A stretch of DNA of 64,000 nt from Scyliorhinus canicula. Taxonomy: Eukaryota. Shown one piece after another: positions 5,417-60,750 of the stretch. The notes beneath the pieces are model-generated. The model was not told where the DNA came from. It ran no database searches and saw nothing but the letters and a program-made list of their open reading frames with translations. The DNA lies in assembly GCF_902713615.1 (NCBI RefSeq), contig NW_024055891.1, positions 1 to 64,000 on the forward strand. Reading direction: 5' to 3'. The stretch's first letter is position 1. Each line of letters begins with the position of its first letter. A program made the position numbers and the translations under genes.

Positions 5417-5540
5417 AGCTTTAACCAGTTACATAGTCTGAAAAAAACACACCATTACAGTGGGAAGAGATTTTACAAGTGTGTGTGCACGAAGACTTAA
5501 CTGATCATTCAACCTGGAAAAACACAAGGACACCCGCACA

Positions 5541-12743: not shown

Positions 12744-13023
12744 GTTCAAACTCGATGATATTCAGGGCAGGATAAATTGGACAACTGTCAGCTCCCGATG
12801 TGGTTTGAGTTTCCTGACTGCAAATCCTCCCCGTCTAATGCCCTGTGAAATTGATTTAAAACAGAAAAACAGTGAGAGAGAACCCACAAAAATCACAAAG
12901 GCAGCTTGTGGAATTGAGCTGAATGAATCTGGTCATTTATGGGGCCGGCACTGGGAAAAAGTGACCATGAAAACTGCTGGATTTTTGTAAAAATCCAACT
13001 GATTCACTGATATCCTTCAGTGA

Positions 13024-13214
13024 CGATGTGGCGATGCCGGCTTTGGACTGGGGTGGGCACAGTAAGAAGTCTTACAACACCAGGTTAAAGTCCAACAGGT
13101 TTGTTTCAAATCACTAGCTTTCGTGAATTCACCTGAGAAAGGAGCAGTGCTCTGAAAGCTAGTGATCTGAAACAAACCTGTTGGACTTTAACCTGGTGTT
13201 GTAAGACTTCTTAC
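13024..13214. mobile_element. Penelope terminal repeat in inverted (hairpin) arrangement with degenerate hammerhead
   Basis: 62-bp inverted arms 13061-13122 and 13154-13215 with 1 mismatch; CACCTGAGAAAGGAGCAGTGCTCTGAAAGCTAGTG on +; 13-bp TSD TATCCTTCAGTGA at 13011-13023 and 13215-13227. Confidence 0.85.
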
Positions 13215-13639
13215 TATCCTTCAGTGAAGGGAACCTGCCCCTTCCCCGCCTCCTCTGTCTGGGCCGACTGAAGACTCTGGCCTCTATGGGGGGAGGGGAG
13301 TGAGGGAGGATTGGGAGCAGAAGCAAGAGAGGGATTTTATATTTGTACAAATCAATCAGGACATTACCAGAATCTCCCAAACCCTCAACCATCATCTCCT
13401 AGAAGGAGCACGGTGTCAGGTGTGTGTGAACAACATCACCTCCACGCTCTCCAAGTTACACACTATCCTGACTTGTCCACGTCCAGCACTGGATGAGCAC
13501 AATTTTCCTCCATTTACATATGGGGAAGACTGAAGCCGCTGTCTTCGGTCCCAGGTGGTGAGTTACTCACCGTAGGATTTCTAGCCTCTGACCTGCTCTT
13601 GCAGCCACAGTATTTATATGACGAGCTCAGTTCAGTTTC

Positions 13640-31492: not shown

Positions 31493-32559
31493 GGTGCGGG
31501 TGTTTTTGTGTCTTTCCAAGTTTGACAATCAGTTAAAGCCTGGTCCACACACACAGCATGTGTACGGTCTCTTCCCCGCTGGAAATGGTGTGATATTTCT
31601 GCAGCCTGTATAATTGGTTAAAGCCCTCTCCACAGTCAGTGCACTGGACACTCTCACTCAGATCTGTGTTTCTTGGTGCCTTTCCAGTCATACTAACGTG
31701 ATGGCCAAAACAGACAATTTCCCTTTCGTGATTCAAAGACTGATGGCATTCAGGTTCTGGTAATTCGAGTGGCTCTGTTAAGTCTTGATGCATTTTGAGA
31801 TTTCTGGCTGCAAATCCTCCCCTTCTGACATCCTGTAAAAGGAGTTTACAAAAGTCTTCACTAAGTACAGGACAGAAATTCAGAACAGACAATGCTAGTT
31901 TCTGTATAATATTCCTCTCCCTTTCCCCTGAATTGGTTTATCTCCATCCCACACATTCTTCCCACATTCTCACTATGATTTAATAATTAGTACTTCATTA
32001 CTTAACTATAAATACTCTATCTAATATGTACCATATTACAAAACTGGATATAGCTGGGTCCTACATTGATTTACTATCTCCTCGGGGCAGCATGGTGGTG
32101 TAGTGGTTAGCACTGCTGCCCCAGGTCGGGTTTGCACGTTCTCCCTGTATCTGCGTGGGTTTTGCCCCCACAGCCCAAAAAGATGTGCAGGTTAGATGAA
32201 TTGGCCACGCTAAATTGTCCTTTAATTGGGAAATAAAAGAATTGGGTGCTCTAAATTTAAAGAAAATACTGTCCCCTTAAATGTCAGCCATCTCTGTGGA
32301 TGCCAGCCCTTTTGAACATTGGGAAAGAGGCCATCCTTTTAGGCAGACAAAATAAATGTGTCAAGCTGAGGGAGAGAGACCTGGGCCAATCTGCCCAGAG
32401 TCTGCACCCTCCCTGGATTCAGTTCTTTTCCCTTCGGTTCCTGCAAGTCAACAATTTAACCCCAGAATGAGTAAATGAAAAGGGGGAGGAAAGACAGTGT
32501 TTCACTCACAGATTTGGAGTCAGGAGGAGGTTTACTCTTCTGTGAAGCTCAATCTGAAT

Positions 32560-46805: not shown

Positions 46806-48189
46806 GTGGGGGTCCTTGTGTCTCTCCAGGTTTGACAATCAGCATTGCCCACACATGGAACATGTGTATGGTTTCTCCTCGCTGTGAATGGTGTGATGTT
46901 TCTTCAGGCTGTGTAACTGGTTAAAGTTCTTTCCACAGTCCATTCACTGGAACACTCTCGCTCGAGCGTGTGTGTGTGTCTCGGTGCTTTTCCAGTCACT
47001 GGTGATTAAAATCTTTTGACACAGAAATATTTCACACTCTAGATTCAAAGTCTGATGATATTCAGCTCCCAATGAATCGATTGGCTGTGCTAGATCACGG
47101 CATGACATTTGTTTTGGGATTTGTGATTGAAAATATCTTCCCTTTTAATATCCTATAAAAATAGATTTTCAAAAGTCATCAGTCCAAGTCCAGGATAGAA
47201 ACTCAGAACAGATAATTCTAGTTTCTATGGAAAATTCTTTCCTCTCTTGTTCCCCAAAAGTTGTAAATCACCGTCTCACACACTCTCTGTTCATTCTCAC
47301 TCTGCTGTGCCTGATATACACACTTCCAATTCTCAAGGTGCCATTTATCTAGATCCATGCTCACTACTTCCTTTTCAGCACACAGGGATCGGAAAATCTT
47401 CATGCAAGTAGTTGGTCTAAATTTATAAGTGTATTTTAGTGGGCTCAAGAATGTGTGAGATATTACTTCATTAGATACACAGAGGTGGTTTGATGAAGAC
47501 ATTTATTTTGGCAGTGAGTGATCATTATATGGAACTCACCGTGTCCAAGAATGGCGGAAGAGGAGATCATCAAAAATTCCAAAATGGATATTTAAGGAAA
47601 TAAACCTAGAGGAATGGGGATATAGAGGGGGAATCGGACTGATTTGATTCTCTGCACAGAGTCAGCATGGACTCGAGGTGCTGAATGGACTCCTTCTCCA
47701 CTGTAATGACTGACTGGAAATATGTAACGTAGCTTCGGTACTGTCTGACAGAAGAGAAATAATTATAAATAAACTTTACTGCACAGCCATAAATAATATA
47801 TTTAATATGTACATTACAAGAACTAGATATATTAATGCTCTACAATCTCCATAGGGGCTAATAACCTGAAAATAAACACATTTCCAGAGATCCCCAACTG
47901 TCCAAGAATTTGCAGGTTACGTGGATTGGGCATGTGGAAATTGCCTCTTGGTGTGTAAAGATGCGCATGTAAGGTGGTTTGGTCATGTTACAATTAGCCC
48001 TTGGTGTCCAAGGATATTCAGGTTAACTGAGGTTACAGGGATAAGGCCTAAGTAGGGTACTCTTTCAGAGGGTCAGTGCAGACTCGATAGGTCGAATGGC
48101 CTCCATCTCCACTGTTGGACTTCCATGGATTAAATTGCAGGATAATGTTTTATTTATTTTTTAAATTCAAATAAATAATAAACTTCATC

Positions 48190-52860: not shown

Positions 52861-54000
52861 TTACTTGGGTTCTGCTATTTTTGCTGCTGTTTTATCACAT
52901 CCAGGACTGAACCATGTTCATTCTGACAGTTGAGTGGGAGGATCAGAGGGTTTCTTTCAGCTGGACTGGCTGGTCTCACCTCTCTGCTTCCAGTGGGCCG
53001 ATGTTTATTGAGCCTGACAGAGCACATTTCCATGGAAATGGCCCACAAAAGTTAATGAAGGACATTTATTTTATCCTGGATAGTAAATAATAATATATTT
53101 TTTTTGTTTTGCAACCATTGCAGGTAGCTAGAAAATAAATACTTTGTCTGTTGCATTGAGTCTACAGCACAGGGCCAGGCCGGTCAGATCAATTGGACTG
53201 TCAGTATTTATGTTCCACATGAGTCTCCACCCGCCCCTCTACATCTCCCCCATCAGCATTTCCCTCTATTCCTTTCTCCCTCATATATGTATCTAGCTTT
53301 ACGTTCAATGTATTCATGCTGTTCACCTCAACCACTCGCTGTGGGAGTGAGTTCCACATTCTCACCACCCGCTGGGTAGAGGTTTCTACTGACATTCCTA
53401 TTGGATTATTGAACGCCTGCATAATCTTAAAGACTTGCATCAGGTCACACTTCAGTCTTTTTTTTTTTAAAAGAAAAGCAGCCCCTGCCTTTCCCGAGAG
53501 GTAAATGCTCTCAGTTTTTCTAATACAGGATGATGTAGATGGGCTGGTCGGTTGCGCAGATCTGTGGGAAATGAAATTTAAGCCAGAAAAGTGTGGGCTG
53601 ATGCCTGTACTCATTAAAGATTACGGTGTTCACTACTTACCTGTCAATAACAGAAGATTGAATAAGTAGTGATCCTTAATTCTAATGGTAATTAATGAAT
53701 CAATAATCAATGAGTAGTTATATACCAAGACTGAATTTTACTTGCTGTAAAATGTAAAACTTTAGTTACTGTTTATGGAAAGAATGTGCAATGAAGATAA
53801 AGATGGAATCATATCGAGCACAGAGGAAGATGATGGTCATTGTTGAGGTCAGTCAGAGATCTTTAGGTTATTGTCCGAGGCCCAACCGTCTTTAACAGGT
53901 TCATCAACAACCTTCCTCCATCATAAGGTCAGGATTACTGATGTTCAGCACCATTCATCACTCCTCAGATACTGAAGCAGTCCATGTTCAAATGCAGTAA

Positions 54001-54596
54001 CCATGATGTGGAGATGCCGGCGTTGGACTGGGGTGAGCACAGTAAGAAGTCTTACAACACCAGGTTAAAGTCCAACAGGTTTGTTTCAAACACGAGCTTT
54101 CGGAGCACGGCTCCTTCTTCAGGTGAATGGAAAGGCTTGTTCCAGAAATGTTTATATAGACACAGTCAGAGATGCCCCGGAATGCGAGCACCTGCAGGCA
54201 ATCAAATCATCAAAGATGCAGAGAGAGAGGTAACTCCAGGTTAAAGAGGTGTGAATTGTCCCAAGCCAGTTCAGTCGGTAGGCCTCTGCAAGTCCAGGCT
54301 TGTTGGTGGGGGCCGAATGTAATGCGACATGAATCCCAGATCCCGGTTGAGTCCGCATTCATGCGTGCGGAACTTAGCTATAAGTTTTTGCTCAGCAATT
54401 TTGCGTTGTCGCGTCTCCTGAAGGCCTCCTTGTAGGGATGCTGACCCGGATATCAGAGGCTGAATGTCCTTGACTGCTGAAGTGTTCCCCAACTGGAAGG
54501 GAACAGTCCTGCCTGTTGATAGTCGCACGATGCCCGTTTATTCGTTGTCGCAGTGTCTGCATGGTCTCGCCAATGTACCACGCTTCGGGACATCCT
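54001..54596 (-). mobile_element. Penelope-like retroelement, 5'-truncated, GIY-YIG endonuclease C-terminus plus terminal repeat
   Basis: WYIGETMQTLRQRINGHR...VGEHF...AEQKLIAKFRTHECGLNRD (one frameshift); 14-bp TSD TTCAAATGCAGTAA at 53987-54000 and 54597-54610. Confidence 0.9.
54091..54125 (-). ncRNA. Minimal type I hammerhead ribozyme in Penelope terminal repeat
   Basis: CAC-CUGAAGA-A-GGAGC(CGU)GCUCC-GAAA-GCUC-GUG: catalytic boxes CUGANGA and GAAA, stem II hairpin, palindromic AGCU stem III. Confidence 0.8.
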
Positions 54597-55219
54597 TTCA
54601 AATGCAGTAAGACCTGGACAATATCTCACCAGGGCAGGGAAGTGACAACTGACATTCTGGCCACACAATGATCCCCTCCAAATAGAATCTAATCATCACT
54701 TCTTGATTTTCAATGACAGCATTGCTGAATTCCCCACTATCCACATCCTGGCATTTACCTTTGGCCAGAAACTCAACTGGACTAACCATATGAATACTGT
54801 GGCTACAAGAGTAGGTCAGAGGCTGGGAATCCTGTGGCTAATAACACACCTGACTCTCCAAAGCCCATCCACCATATACAAGGCACAAGTAAGTAGTCTA
54901 ATGGAATATTCTCCACCAACCTGGATGAGTGTAGCTCCAACACCATTCAAGAAGCTCAACAGCACCTAAGATAAAGCAGCCACCTTTATTAGCAAGCTAT
55001 CCACAAACATTCAATCTCTCCACCACTCTATCACCTGCACATCTTTGTGTTTTGGGGGCGAAACCCATGCAGTCACGGAGAGAATGTGCATACTCCACCT
55101 GGAAGTGACCCGGCGCTGGGATACGAACCCGGGTCCTCAGCGCTGTAGGCAGCAATGCTAACCACTGTCACGTGCCGCCTACCGTTAACCTCTCATTAGC
55201 CTCAGTTTGAAACTGTACA

Positions 55220-57649: not shown

Positions 57650-59292
57650 AAAGTTGTCGAGGAGAATATTGAGATACAGGCTACTAGACTAGAAAGGCTT
57701 GAGGTTCATAAGGAGGAGGTGTTAACGATTCTGGAAAGTGTGAAAATAGATAAGTCCCCTGGGCTGGATGGGATTTATCCTAGGATTTTCTGGGAAGCTA
57801 GGGGGGAGATTGCTGAGCCTTTGGCTTTGATCTTTAAGTCATCTTTGTCTACAGGAATAGTGCCAGAGGACTGGGGGATAGCAAATGTTGTCCCCTTGTA
57901 CAAGAAGGGGAGTAGAGATAACCCCGGTAACTATAGGCCAGTGAGCCTTCTGTTGTGGGGAAAGTCTTGGAAAGGTTTATAAGAGATAGGATGTATAATC
58001 ATCTGGAAAGGAATAATTTGATTAGAGATAGTCAACATGGTTTTGTGAAGGGTAGGTCGTGCCTCACAAACCTCATTGAGTTCTTCGAGAAGGTGACCAA
58101 ACAGGTGGATGAGGGTAAAGCAGTTGATGTGGTGTATATGGATTTCAGTAAAGCGTTTGATAAGGTTCCCCACGGTAGGCTATTGCAGAAAATACAGAGG
58201 CATGGGATTCAAGGTGATTTAGCAGTTTGGATCAGAAATTGGCTAGCTGATAGAAGACAAAGAGTGGTGGTTGATGGGAAATGCTCTGACTGGTGTCCAG
58301 TTACTAGTGGTGTGCCACAAGGATCTGTTTTAGGGCCGTTGCTGTTTGTCATTTTTATAAATGACCTGGAGGAGGGCGTAGAAGGATGGGTGAGTAAATT
58401 TGCAGATGACACTAAAGTCGGTGGAGTTGTGGACAGTGCAGAAGGATGTTACAAGTTACAGAGGGACATAGATAAACTGCAGAGCTGGGCTGACAGGTGG
58501 CAAATGGAGTTTAATGCAGAAAAGTGTGAGGTGATTCATTTTGGAAGGAATAACAGAAAGGCAGAGTACTGGGCTAATGGTAAGATTCTTGGTAGTGTGG
58601 ACGAGCAGAGAGATCTCGGTGTCCATGTCCATAGATCCCTGAAAGTTGCCACCCAGGTTGAGAGGGTTGTTAAGAAGGCGTACCATGTGTTAGCTTTTAT
58701 TGGTAGAGGAATTGAGTTTCGGAGCCATGAGGTCATGTTGCAGTTGTACAAAACTCTGGTGCGGCCGTATTTGGAGTATTGTGTGCAGTTCTAGTCGCCA
58801 CATTATAGGAAGGATGTGGAAGCATTAGAAAGGGTACAGAGGAGATTTACAAGAATGTTGCCTGGTATGGAGGGAAGATCATATGAAGAAAGGCTGAAGG
58901 ACTTGAGGCTGTTTTCGTTAGAGAGAAGAAGGTTAAGAGGTGACTTAATTGAGGCATACAAGATGATCAGAGGATTAGATAGGGTGGACAGTGAGAGCCT
59001 TTTTCCTCGGATGGTGATGTCCAGCACGAGGGGACATAGCTTTAAATTGAGGGGAGATAGATATAGGACAGATGTCAGAGGTAGGTTCTTTACTCAGTGA
59101 GTAGTAAGGGCGTGGAATGCCCTGCCTGCAACAGTAGTGGACTCTCCAACACTAAACGCATTCAAATGGTCATTGGATAGGCATATGGACGATAAGGGAA
59201 TTGTGTAGAGGGACTTTAGAAGGGTTTCACAGGACGGCGCAACATCGTGGGCCGAAGGGCCTGTACTGCGCTGTAATGTTCTATGTTCTATA
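57650..59292 (+). mobile_element. Young CR1-clade LINE (HER1-like), 5'-truncated, RT domain and 3' UTR
   Basis: KSPGLDG...QHGFVKGRSCLTNL...DFSKAFDKV...[10 protein letters not shown]...FADD; few lesions; 3' end GGGCCGAAGGGCCTGT...(TGTTCTA)n. Confidence 0.95.
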
Positions 59293-59689
59293 AGAAGAGA
59301 CTGAAGGGCAACCTGACTGAAGTCTTTAAAATTAAGAAGGGTCCAATAAGAATTTCATGAGCTGACTGGCCTGGCCCTGTGCTGTAGACCCAATGGAACA
59401 GAGTATTTATTTTAGATCTAACTGCAGTAGTAGGAAAACACTATTTACTCTCCAGGATAAAATAAACGTACTTCATCAGCTTTTATGGATCATTTCTGTG
59501 GAAATGTGAACGTTCTGGCTCAAAGAGCATCAGCCCACTGGAAACAGAGTCGTGAGATCAGCTTGTCCAGCAGAAAGAAACCTTCTGACCCTCCCACTTC
59601 TCCCACTGTCAGAATGAACATGGCTCAGTCCTGGATGTGAGTAACAGCAGCATTAACAGTAGAATCCAACCCCTGTCATCATTTATGAC

Positions 59690-59813
59690 ATGATGTGGAG
59701 ATGCCGGCGTTGGACTGGGGTGAGCACAGTAAGAAGTCTTACAACACCAGGTTAAAGTCCAACAGGTTTGTTTCAAACACGAGCTTTCGGAGCACGGCTC
59801 CTTCTTCAGGTGA
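59690..59813 (-). mobile_element. Short Penelope terminal-repeat insertion at the ZNF-9 stop codon
   Basis: Identical by eye to ~54003-54128; 12-bp TSD ATCATTTATGAC at 59678-59689 and 59814-59825. Confidence 0.9.
59778..59812 (-). ncRNA. Minimal type I hammerhead ribozyme
   Basis: Same sequence as 54091-54125. Confidence 0.8.
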
Positions 59814-59814
59814 A

Positions 59815-60750
59815 TCATTTATGACGTCGCTGGTGTCTCAGCAGGTGGGATGAATCAATGAATCCTTTCTCACAGTCGGAGCAGGTGAATAGCCTCTCCC
59901 CACTGTGAACTTGCTGGTGTTTCAGGAGGCTGGATAACTGAGTGAATCCTTTCCCACACTGAGAACAGGTGAATGGCCTCTCTCCAGTGTGAACTCGCTG
60001 ATGTTTCAGGAGGCTGGATAACTGAGTGAATCCTTTCCCACACTGAGAACAGGTGAATGGCCTCTCTCCAGTGTGAATGCGCCGGTGTCTCTGCAGGTTG
60101 GATGAAGTCGTAAATTTTTTCCCACAGTCGGAGCAGGTGAATGGCCTCTCCCCGGTGTGAATGCGCCGGTGAGTCAGCAGACTGGATGAATCACTGAATC
60201 TCTTCCCACAGGTGGAGCATGTGAATGGCTTCTCGCTGGTGTGAAGACGCTGGTGCGTCTTAAGGCTGGATGACTGATTGAATCCCTTGCCACACTTGGA
60301 GCAGGTAAAGGGCCTCTCCCCAGTGTGAACTCTCTGGTGCACCAGCAGGCTGGATGAGTCGCTGTATCTCTTCCCACAATTGGAGCAGATAAAGGGCCTC
60401 TCCCCAGTGTGAACACGCTGGTGTAGGTACCAGCAGGGCAGATGAATCAATGTATCCCTTCCCACACATGGAGCAGATGAATGGCCTCTCCCCAGTGTGA
60501 ACCTTCTGATGGGTTACCAGGTTGGATGACTGAGCGAATCCCTTCCCACACTCTGAGCAGGTGAATGGTCTCTCCCCAGTGTGAACGCGTTTGTGTGTTT
60601 GCAGATGGGATGACTGAGTGAATCCCCTCCCACACTTAGAGCAGGTGAAAGGCCTCTCCCCAGTGTGAATATGTAGATGAGCTTCCAGTCCAGATGGGAA
60701 ATGGAAGCTCTTCCCACATTCCCCACATTTCCACGGTTTCTCTGTGGTGC
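59815..60750 (-). pseudogene. C2H2 zinc-finger probable pseudogene ZNF-9 (about 11 fingers)
   Basis: The family start ACCATGGAGAAA reads ACCACAGAGAAA here, and a 4-bp insertion near 60427 splits the array into two frames. A Penelope insertion abuts the stop codon. Confidence 0.8.

Follow-up and report, generated by a model that had tools for sequence, protein, structure and literature searches.

A Penelope-like element copy carrying a minimal hammerhead motif at the stop codon of a probable zinc-finger pseudogene in Scyliorhinus canicula: a likely case of recent, neutral insertion

Minimal hammerhead motifs of the Penelope type are widespread in non-mammalian vertebrate genomes. They are carried by Penelope-like elements (PLEs), whose endonuclease-positive members are defined by a reverse transcriptase with a GIY-YIG endonuclease behind it. 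The present study concerns one such motif in a stretch of 64,000 nucleotides from the shark Scyliorhinus canicula (RefSeq assembly GCF_902713615.1, contig NW_024055891.1, positions 1 to 64,000 of the forward strand; hereafter the window). Here, a short PLE copy lies directly behind the stop codon of ZNF-9, a C2H2 zinc-finger gene, on the strand of its mRNA. A first-pass annotation of the letters had proposed a route by which a retroelement could silence or regulate a ZNF gene. The analysis reported here points instead, as the likely explanation, to a very recent product of PLE retrotransposition at the stop of an already dead ZNF gene, which would be an ordinary neutral insertion and not a gene switch.

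Several systems close to this locus have been described. Studies of the minimal hammerhead ribozymes (min-HHRs) of metazoan PLEs listed the traits that mark out such motifs from chance resemblances: an unpaired base between A9 and 10.1, a G10.1-C11.1 pair, a palindrome at 15.2-16.2, little or no loop 3, and families with compensatory changes (Cervera and de la Pena 2014, PMC4209133). In the same work, cleavage by a single min-HHR of S. mansoni was undetectable, and dimers and trimers showed low activity, mostly at unphysiological Mg2+. A later review agrees that lone min-HHRs cut poorly (PMC6765202). In another study, the hammerhead of the PLE Poseidon PAc from Anolis carolinensis was cleaved solely when PLE protein was added, and no RNA-seq reads started or ended at its cut site (PMC11167929). 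Non-LTR retrozymes and their vertebrate monomer derivatives (PMC7229834; bioRxiv 10.64898/2026.07.22.740005) form another related group; retrozyme-type repeats that overlap exons do so mostly in 3′ untranslated regions (3′ UTRs) (bioRxiv 10.64898/2026.07.22.740005). Finally, the mammalian Clec2 genes carry a discontinuous hammerhead (Martick et al. 2008, reviewed in PMC6765202).

Read along the minus strand, the locus is made up of the following parts.

60790-59815, minus strand: ZNF-9, an 11-finger C2H2 array and probable pseudogene, judged by start loss and a frameshift.
59825-59814, minus strand: upstream copy of the target-site duplication (TSD), the 12-mer gtcataaatgat, which includes the ZNF stop TGA at 59817-59815.
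59813-59690, minus strand: the Penelope-like mini-copy (copy A), 124 bp, consisting of the hammerhead and a 91-nt tail.
59812-59778, minus strand: minimal type I hammerhead, recognized by published min-HHR features (PMC4209133).
59763-59709, minus strand: tail hairpin, in which GUUGGA (59763-59758) pairs with UCCAAC (59714-59709), with CCGGC and then an A/C-rich 3′ end after it.
59689-59678, minus strand: downstream copy of the TSD, gtcataaatgat again, holding a second TGA.

The ZNF open reading frame (ORF) at 60465-59815 on the minus strand terminates with the codons CAT AAA TGA. The AT that closes the upstream TSD (59815-59814) also matches the start of the element; given this microhomology, the duplication measures 10-12 bp and the insert 124-126 bp. 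Copy A then reads ttcac, CUGAAGA (59809-59803), an unpaired A, GGAGC-cgu-GCUCC, GAAA, GCUC, and GUG, with the hammerhead core beginning 5 nt past the ZNF-9 stop. When the insert and one 12-mer were deleted in silico, the remaining sequence aligned without gaps to the stop and 3′ UTR regions of several paralogs in the window, and copy A is therefore a genuine insertion with a TSD. Direct reading, this empty-site alignment, and identity to copy B (a longer copy of the same element) all upheld the earlier description of a Penelope-like terminal fragment whose TSD duplicates the stop codon. The identity to the 3′ end of copy B is 100% over 126 bp, and both copies end alike; this lack of divergence, 0 differences in 126 sites, argues for a very recent arrival of copy A.

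The neighborhood of the stop, CATAAATGATGA, is an A/T-rich island behind GC-richer coding sequence. PAc favors A/T-rich targets (PMC11167929), and by analogy a similar preference may be the reason for the exact site of insertion. A preference for TGA was also considered, as all three TSDs found for this element in the window finish near TGA; it was dropped, since three events do not suffice where microhomology leaves the ends ambiguous. As a separate observation, the insertion generates an ATG (from AAATGATT), which opens a 69-codon ORF across the hammerhead and tail (59609-59818, minus strand). There is no evidence that this ORF is of any significance.

Compared to the min-HHRs of metazoan PLEs, the shark motif shows the same plan in every part. 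The core consists of the CUGAAGA given above, GAAA (59788-59785), and UC (59782-59781), so that C3-U4-G5-A6-N7-G8-A9, G12-A13-A14, and U16.1-H17 are all present. An extra unpaired A at 59802 stands between A9 and 10.1, and the first pair of helix II is G10.1-C11.1. Helix II is formed by GGAGC and GCUCC around a CGU loop, whereas helix III is replaced by the loopless palindrome AGCU (A15.1-G-C-U16.1). Helix I, which is drawn from the flanks as in type I hammerheads, is weak, with CAC/GUG as three contiguous pairs and an A-U pair past a UU/UU mismatch. C17 is 59781, and the cut is predicted between 59781 and 59780, 34 nt past the stop, within the interval of about 30-35 nt that had been proposed. 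As judged from its letters, the motif carries every published sequence trait of a PLE min-HHR, in agreement with the previous reading, which had placed an intact minimal hammerhead on the mRNA strand of ZNF-9.

The likeness to the metazoan PLE min-HHRs (Cervera and de la Pena 2014, PMC4209133; Lunse et al. 2016, as summarized in PMC6765202) thus covers the type I fold with its CUGANGA/GAAA/UH core, the unpaired base between A9 and 10.1, the G10.1-C11.1 pair, the AGCU palindrome in place of a helix III loop, and the short helix I. It extends to the terminal position beside an ORF for a reverse transcriptase and a GIY-YIG endonuclease, and to the occurrence of mostly solitary, truncated copies. 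Compared to the Schistosoma min-HHR families, helix II is shorter (5 bp here versus 7-8 bp) and helix I has three contiguous pairs. There is no difference in kind, and the shark motif is a further member of the family.

A relaxed min-HHR descriptor was run over both strands of the window, with 200 Markov-1 resampled sequences as the null. It gave two matches, versus 0.02 expected; the two are identical and both lie within the repeat, in copies A and B. Structures were compared among three sequences in all, namely, the window's own copy and two relatives from public assemblies, L001 and L002. L001 contains a full reverse transcriptase–endonuclease ORF with its ATG at 257 and the hammerhead motif at 140, while in L002 the motif lies ~350 nt past the ORF. 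Both relatives keep the same hammerhead plan at the same place as the shark element. In L001, four of the five pairs of stem II are altered on both sides.

The element itself could be identified from two further copies in the window.

54596-54003, minus strand (53987 to 54610 with its TSDs): copy B, the longer copy of the same element, recognized by its identity to copy A.
54610-54597 and 54000-53987, minus strand: the 14-bp TSD of copy B, seen as a flanking duplication.
54122-54091, minus strand: the hammerhead of copy B, identical to the motif of copy A.
13024-13215 (13012-13227 with the TSD), no strand assigned: copy C, an older inverted head-to-head double copy within a single 12-bp duplication, ATCCTTCAGTGA.

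Copy B is 5′-truncated within the GIY-YIG domain (YIGET). Its ORF remnant runs from WYIGET through GLNRD to a stop and is followed by ~150 nt of non-coding sequence before the hammerhead. A Pfam search of the ORF pieces gave GIY-YIG at an E value of 0.017, a weak match below the cut-off, and within the window the endonuclease remnant alone is present. An exhaustive phmmer search with a 68-residue piece of copy B, in turn, returned 301 relatives at E ≤ 0.001. The long ones among them carry an RVT_1 domain and then, at the C-terminus, the matching region, which is itself assigned to GIY-YIG (P0026, P0123); in P0008, for example, RVT_1 occupies residues 370-559 and the region matching copy B residues 788-841. 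As the relatives of the copy B endonuclease are proteins with RVT_1 and GIY-YIG, copies A and B are by sequence a Penelope-like element, probably of the endonuclease-positive lineage. In a predicted protein, P0001 (391 aa), a rhodopsin-type seven-transmembrane domain at 24-248 is fused to a Penelope endonuclease fragment at 249-302, with 78% identity to copy B; the fusion probably reflects a gene prediction that extended from a G-protein-coupled receptor gene into a PLE inserted at its 3′ end.

Copy C is 92-95% identical to the element. Its left arm begins inside the hammerhead and reaches the normal 3′ end, its right arm begins at ATTCAC like copy A and is 3′-truncated, and its hammerhead core has been mutated to CUGAGAA, with the loss of G8. 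Inverted partial copies are known among PLEs, and copy C shows this tandem or inverted partial-copy trait. The TSDs of copies A, B, and C are 12, 14, and 12 bp long, and the common 3′ end of the element is ...CACATCAT. The terminal traits of PLEs are likewise present: a hammerhead in the terminal repeat region, a 3′ "tail," and target duplications of variable length. The 64-kb window holds three independent insertions of this PLE family together with ~11 ZNF ORFs.

The 5′ end of copy A falls on the same nucleotide as that of the right arm of copy C, the first of ATTCAC. The counterpart of this nucleotide in copy B, A 54128, sits 6 nt before the hammerhead core in the context CCA(+1)TTC, which fits the initiator (Inr) consensus. 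TATA-like octamers lie upstream of C3 in all three elements, at 36 nt in the shark element, 40 nt in L001, and 35 nt in L002.

54158-54151, minus strand: TATA-like box TATATAAA in copy B, 30 nt upstream of A 54128, the counterpart of the copy A 5′ end.
100-107 of L001 and ~2996-3002 of L002: TATA-like boxes of the relatives, placed by their equivalent distance to the hammerhead.

At the other end of the unit, the long-range stem GUUGGA/UCCAAC and the CCGGC after it are common to the three diverged elements (~190-245 in L001, ~3080-3140 in L002), with one covarying pair. The shark tail finishes at the position that matches the ATG of the L001 ORF.

Compared to PAc (PMC11167929), this arrangement has several features in common: the hammerhead lies just upstream of the ORF start, insertions finish in the tail at an A/C-rich stem-loop, targets are A/T-rich, and extension is possible on either DNA strand, in keeping with the inverted arrangement of copy C. 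By analogy with PAc, the tail hairpin is a probable site of reverse transcriptase binding and initiation. The two elements differ in that the ORF of PAc begins inside stem II and its tail lies within the ORF, whereas the shark tail finishes at about the ORF ATG (by L001) and a TATA-like box precedes the unit. Judged by these sequence features, it is reasonably probable that the insert copies the shortest PLE RNA in full, from start site through hammerhead to the 5′ UTR with priming hairpin, and is not a random 5′ truncation. Copy A itself is without the TATA box, so that its transcription would occur solely by read-through from ZNF-9.

The state of ZNF-9 at the time of the insertion bears directly on its consequences. 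At the start position, four paralogs of the window carry ...ACC/ACA/ATG ATG GAG AAA..., and ZNF-9 reads ACC ACA GAG AAA, with ACA at 60745-60743; no other in-frame ATG was found in ZNF-9 past the preceding stop. The linker that joins fingers 4 and 5 has gained four nucleotides, CCTA (60427-60424), which produces a frameshift, and Met is absent throughout the seven C-terminal fingers. Both lesions, the lost ATG and the frameshift, had been reported in the first-pass annotation and were found again here. From the 0 differences in 126 sites, per-site divergence since the insertion was calculated to be less than ~0.024 at 95%. Two hits in the start codon (ATG to ACG to ACA) after the insertion would then have p < ~6e-4, or p < ~5e-3 if CpG decay, the second step, is tenfold faster. 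With no substitution in the insert and two in the start codon, the ATG was very probably lost before the insertion, and it follows that no working gene would have been silenced by it. By this comparison of sequences, ZNF-9 was very probably dead before copy A arrived.

Whether a lone copy of the motif would cut can be approached through its predicted folding. In a local context of 47-71 nt, the minimum free energy (MFE) structure recovers helices I and II, while for the whole 126-nt unit the MFE fold differs from the hammerhead, with a z-score of -1.1. By nearest-neighbor energies, the catalytically relevant domain-swapped trans-dimer lies at +1.7 kcal/mol versus two monomers, and the most favorable dimer in the prediction, at -8.1 kcal/mol, is a duplex of stem II that would not be catalytic, with a dissociation constant (Kd) of ~2 µM; these dimer energies take account of secondary structure alone, without tertiary contacts or proteins, and are weak evidence. 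A search of sequencing runs with a 231-bp junction query showed that matches level off at 0.65 of the words in most runs, probably owing to the multi-copy element, and no run holding the query was recorded as RNA. By analogy with the published min-HHRs, appreciable cleavage by a single copy is unlikely in a rare transcript that reads through from ZNF-9.

The following course of events would account for the locus. An endonuclease-encoding PLE, lately active in this shark genome, would have produced the insert by retrotransposition. Its template would have been the shortest self-contained PLE RNA, running from the A of the ATTCAC start through the minimal hammerhead to the 5′ UTR-like tail, and the PLE reverse transcriptase would have begun copying internally at the conserved tail hairpin. 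A staggered break in A/T-rich sequence, which by chance lay across the ZNF-9 stop, would then have received the copied unit, giving rise to the 10-12-bp duplication. Since ZNF-9 had most likely lost its start codon beforehand and was most likely dead already, the insertion would be neutral. The hammerhead would be a passenger whose normal role may lie in the processing of PLE transcripts, where tandem copies and/or PLE protein could enable a dimeric active fold; from a lone copy in a read-through transcript, little cutting or none would be expected.

Several points weigh against this explanation. The Rfam hammerhead models gave no match in the whole window at gathering thresholds, nor in 59500-60000 at E ≤ 10. 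Such models presumably expect a helix III hairpin, which min-HHRs do not have, and we take this to be the likely reason for the missing score. (Weak Rfam matches to ROSE_3 and SNORD69 were taken as chance.) The start site is placed by two shared 5′ ends and by motif positions, and not by cap analysis of gene expression (CAGE) or rapid amplification of cDNA ends (RACE). The promoter of Penelope in D. virilis, moreover, is internal and TATA-less (PMC2377424); promoter architecture varies among PLE lineages. As for the gene, the zinc ligands are intact in all 11 fingers and no in-frame stop is present, which indicates that gene death was recent; whether it preceded the insertion was judged from substitution rates rather than from an empty allele. 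An upstream coding exon providing an ATG is, strictly speaking, still conceivable, and the frameshift would break the protein regardless.

Other explanations have to be set against the same evidence. With the Rfam models silent and the fold z-score of the 126-nt unit unremarkable, the motif might be thought a chance resemblance unrelated to ribozymes; this is scarcely credible, given the two descriptor matches versus 0.02 expected, the full set of min-HHR traits at the place expected within a PLE, and the compensatory changes in stem II among relatives. A more serious question is whether the 5′ end of copy A is a random 5′ truncation that arose during target-primed reverse transcription and matches copy C by coincidence. 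PLEs are often 5′-truncated, copy B is truncated inside its ORF, only two shared ends were seen, and the left arm of copy C begins elsewhere, within the hammerhead. However, the same nucleotide was used in two independent events, in copy B it lies 30 nt behind a TATA box in an Inr-like context, and two diverged relatives have TATA-like boxes at an equivalent distance. Random truncation is thus a possible but rather unlikely account of this end.

The remaining alternatives grant the hammerhead some activity. In the model of the first-pass annotation, it cuts ZNF-9 transcripts 34 nt past the stop and detaches the 3′ UTR and poly(A), the loss of the ATG and the frameshift being later decay. Its position and strand are right, its core is intact, the decay of the gene is recent, and there is the precedent of the Clec2 hammerhead between stop and poly(A) signal (PMC6765202); in Xenopus, genes are depleted of hammerhead repeats of the retrozyme type (bioRxiv 10.64898/2026.07.22.740005). 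Against this stand the insert with no substitution beside a start codon with two and an indel, the inactivity of single min-HHRs in vitro and the need of the Anolis hammerhead for PLE protein (PMC4209133, PMC11167929), and an active trans-dimer that secondary-structure energies do not stabilize. The silencing or regulation of a ZNF gene by a retroelement is for these reasons very unlikely here, and that part of the annotation was not supported. By chance alone, an estimated few percent of insertions in ZNF clusters would land likewise, with ~3 kb of ZNF 3′ UTR per window and half of the insertions in sense. A milder form, in which the hammerhead is conditionally active and read-through ZNF-9 RNA is cut where PLE protein or many motif-bearing PLE transcripts are present, for example, in the germline, would have no consequence, as the gene is dead. 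The protein-assisted cleavage of the Anolis PLE (PMC11167929), a young and abundant family with three copies in this window, and the identical motif in independent copies speak for it; the lack of RNA-seq ends at the Anolis cut site and a best predicted dimer that is non-catalytic, with micromolar Kd, make it improbable. The broadest version would turn lone sense-strand PLE mini-units in 3′ UTRs into conditional RNA-cutting modules, silent alone and cleaving host mRNA in the presence of PLE protein or many sister transcripts. If it were true, Penelope bursts would knock down ZNF genes, the usual repressors of transposons, and ZNF-9 would be a casualty or fossil of such a burst; its probability is judged to be very slight.

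Compared to the Clec2 hammerhead (Martick et al. 2008, reviewed in PMC6765202), the predicted shark cut site has the same location, on the mRNA strand between the stop and the poly(A) signal. The first AATAAA noticed downstream lies near 59414, in an interval that was not searched for other poly(A) signals. The Clec2 motif is a full, tertiary-stabilized ribozyme in intact genes and is active in vitro, whereas the shark motif is minimal, dimer-dependent, very young, and situated in a pseudogene. With the ATG absent and the frame shifted, the location agrees with a Clec2-like regulatory element but the gene is not intact, and on this point a regulatory reading fails. Compared to non-LTR retrozymes and their vertebrate monomer derivatives (PMC7229834; bioRxiv 10.64898/2026.07.22.740005), the insert is likewise a short non-coding hammerhead unit from a PLE terminus. 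Retrozymes, however, are tandem repeats that give circular RNAs, while the insert is a single unit identical to the end of the autonomous element, with no second hammerhead nearby.

Some further observations were made in the neighborhood. At ~59893-60060 on the minus strand, two neighboring fingers of ZNF-9 have the same protein sequence, one finger (84 bp) having been duplicated in tandem very recently. Upstream of the conserved start of the ZNF paralogs (…LERHK..ATG GAG AAA), there is a shared degenerate finger-like stretch that closes in TGA (e.g., 46840-46950, 31530-31640, and 5430-5540), which suggests that the present ZNF start arose within a more ancient array of greater length. Between the two Penelope copies A and B, just downstream of the ZNF-9 3′ region, lie ORF fragments of a different retroelement (57955-58794 and 58816-59100, both on the plus strand). 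Pfam assigned RVT_1 with an E value of 3e-32, and the fragments are probably LINE-like (long interspersed nuclear element).

The locus in itself alters little in what is known, as it represents an already-known kind of PLE min-HHR terminal unit. As its junctions are unique, it is nevertheless well suited as a natural test for cutting by a single min-HHR in vivo. What is new here is that the 5′ end of copy A coincides with a probable TATA/Inr start site. The order proposed for the element, namely, a TATA-like box, a start at the edge of helix I, the hammerhead, a conserved priming hairpin, and an end at the ORF start, would explain why such units have a discrete 5′ end. This anatomy suggests a route by which short non-autonomous hammerhead units may be born from autonomous Penelope elements.

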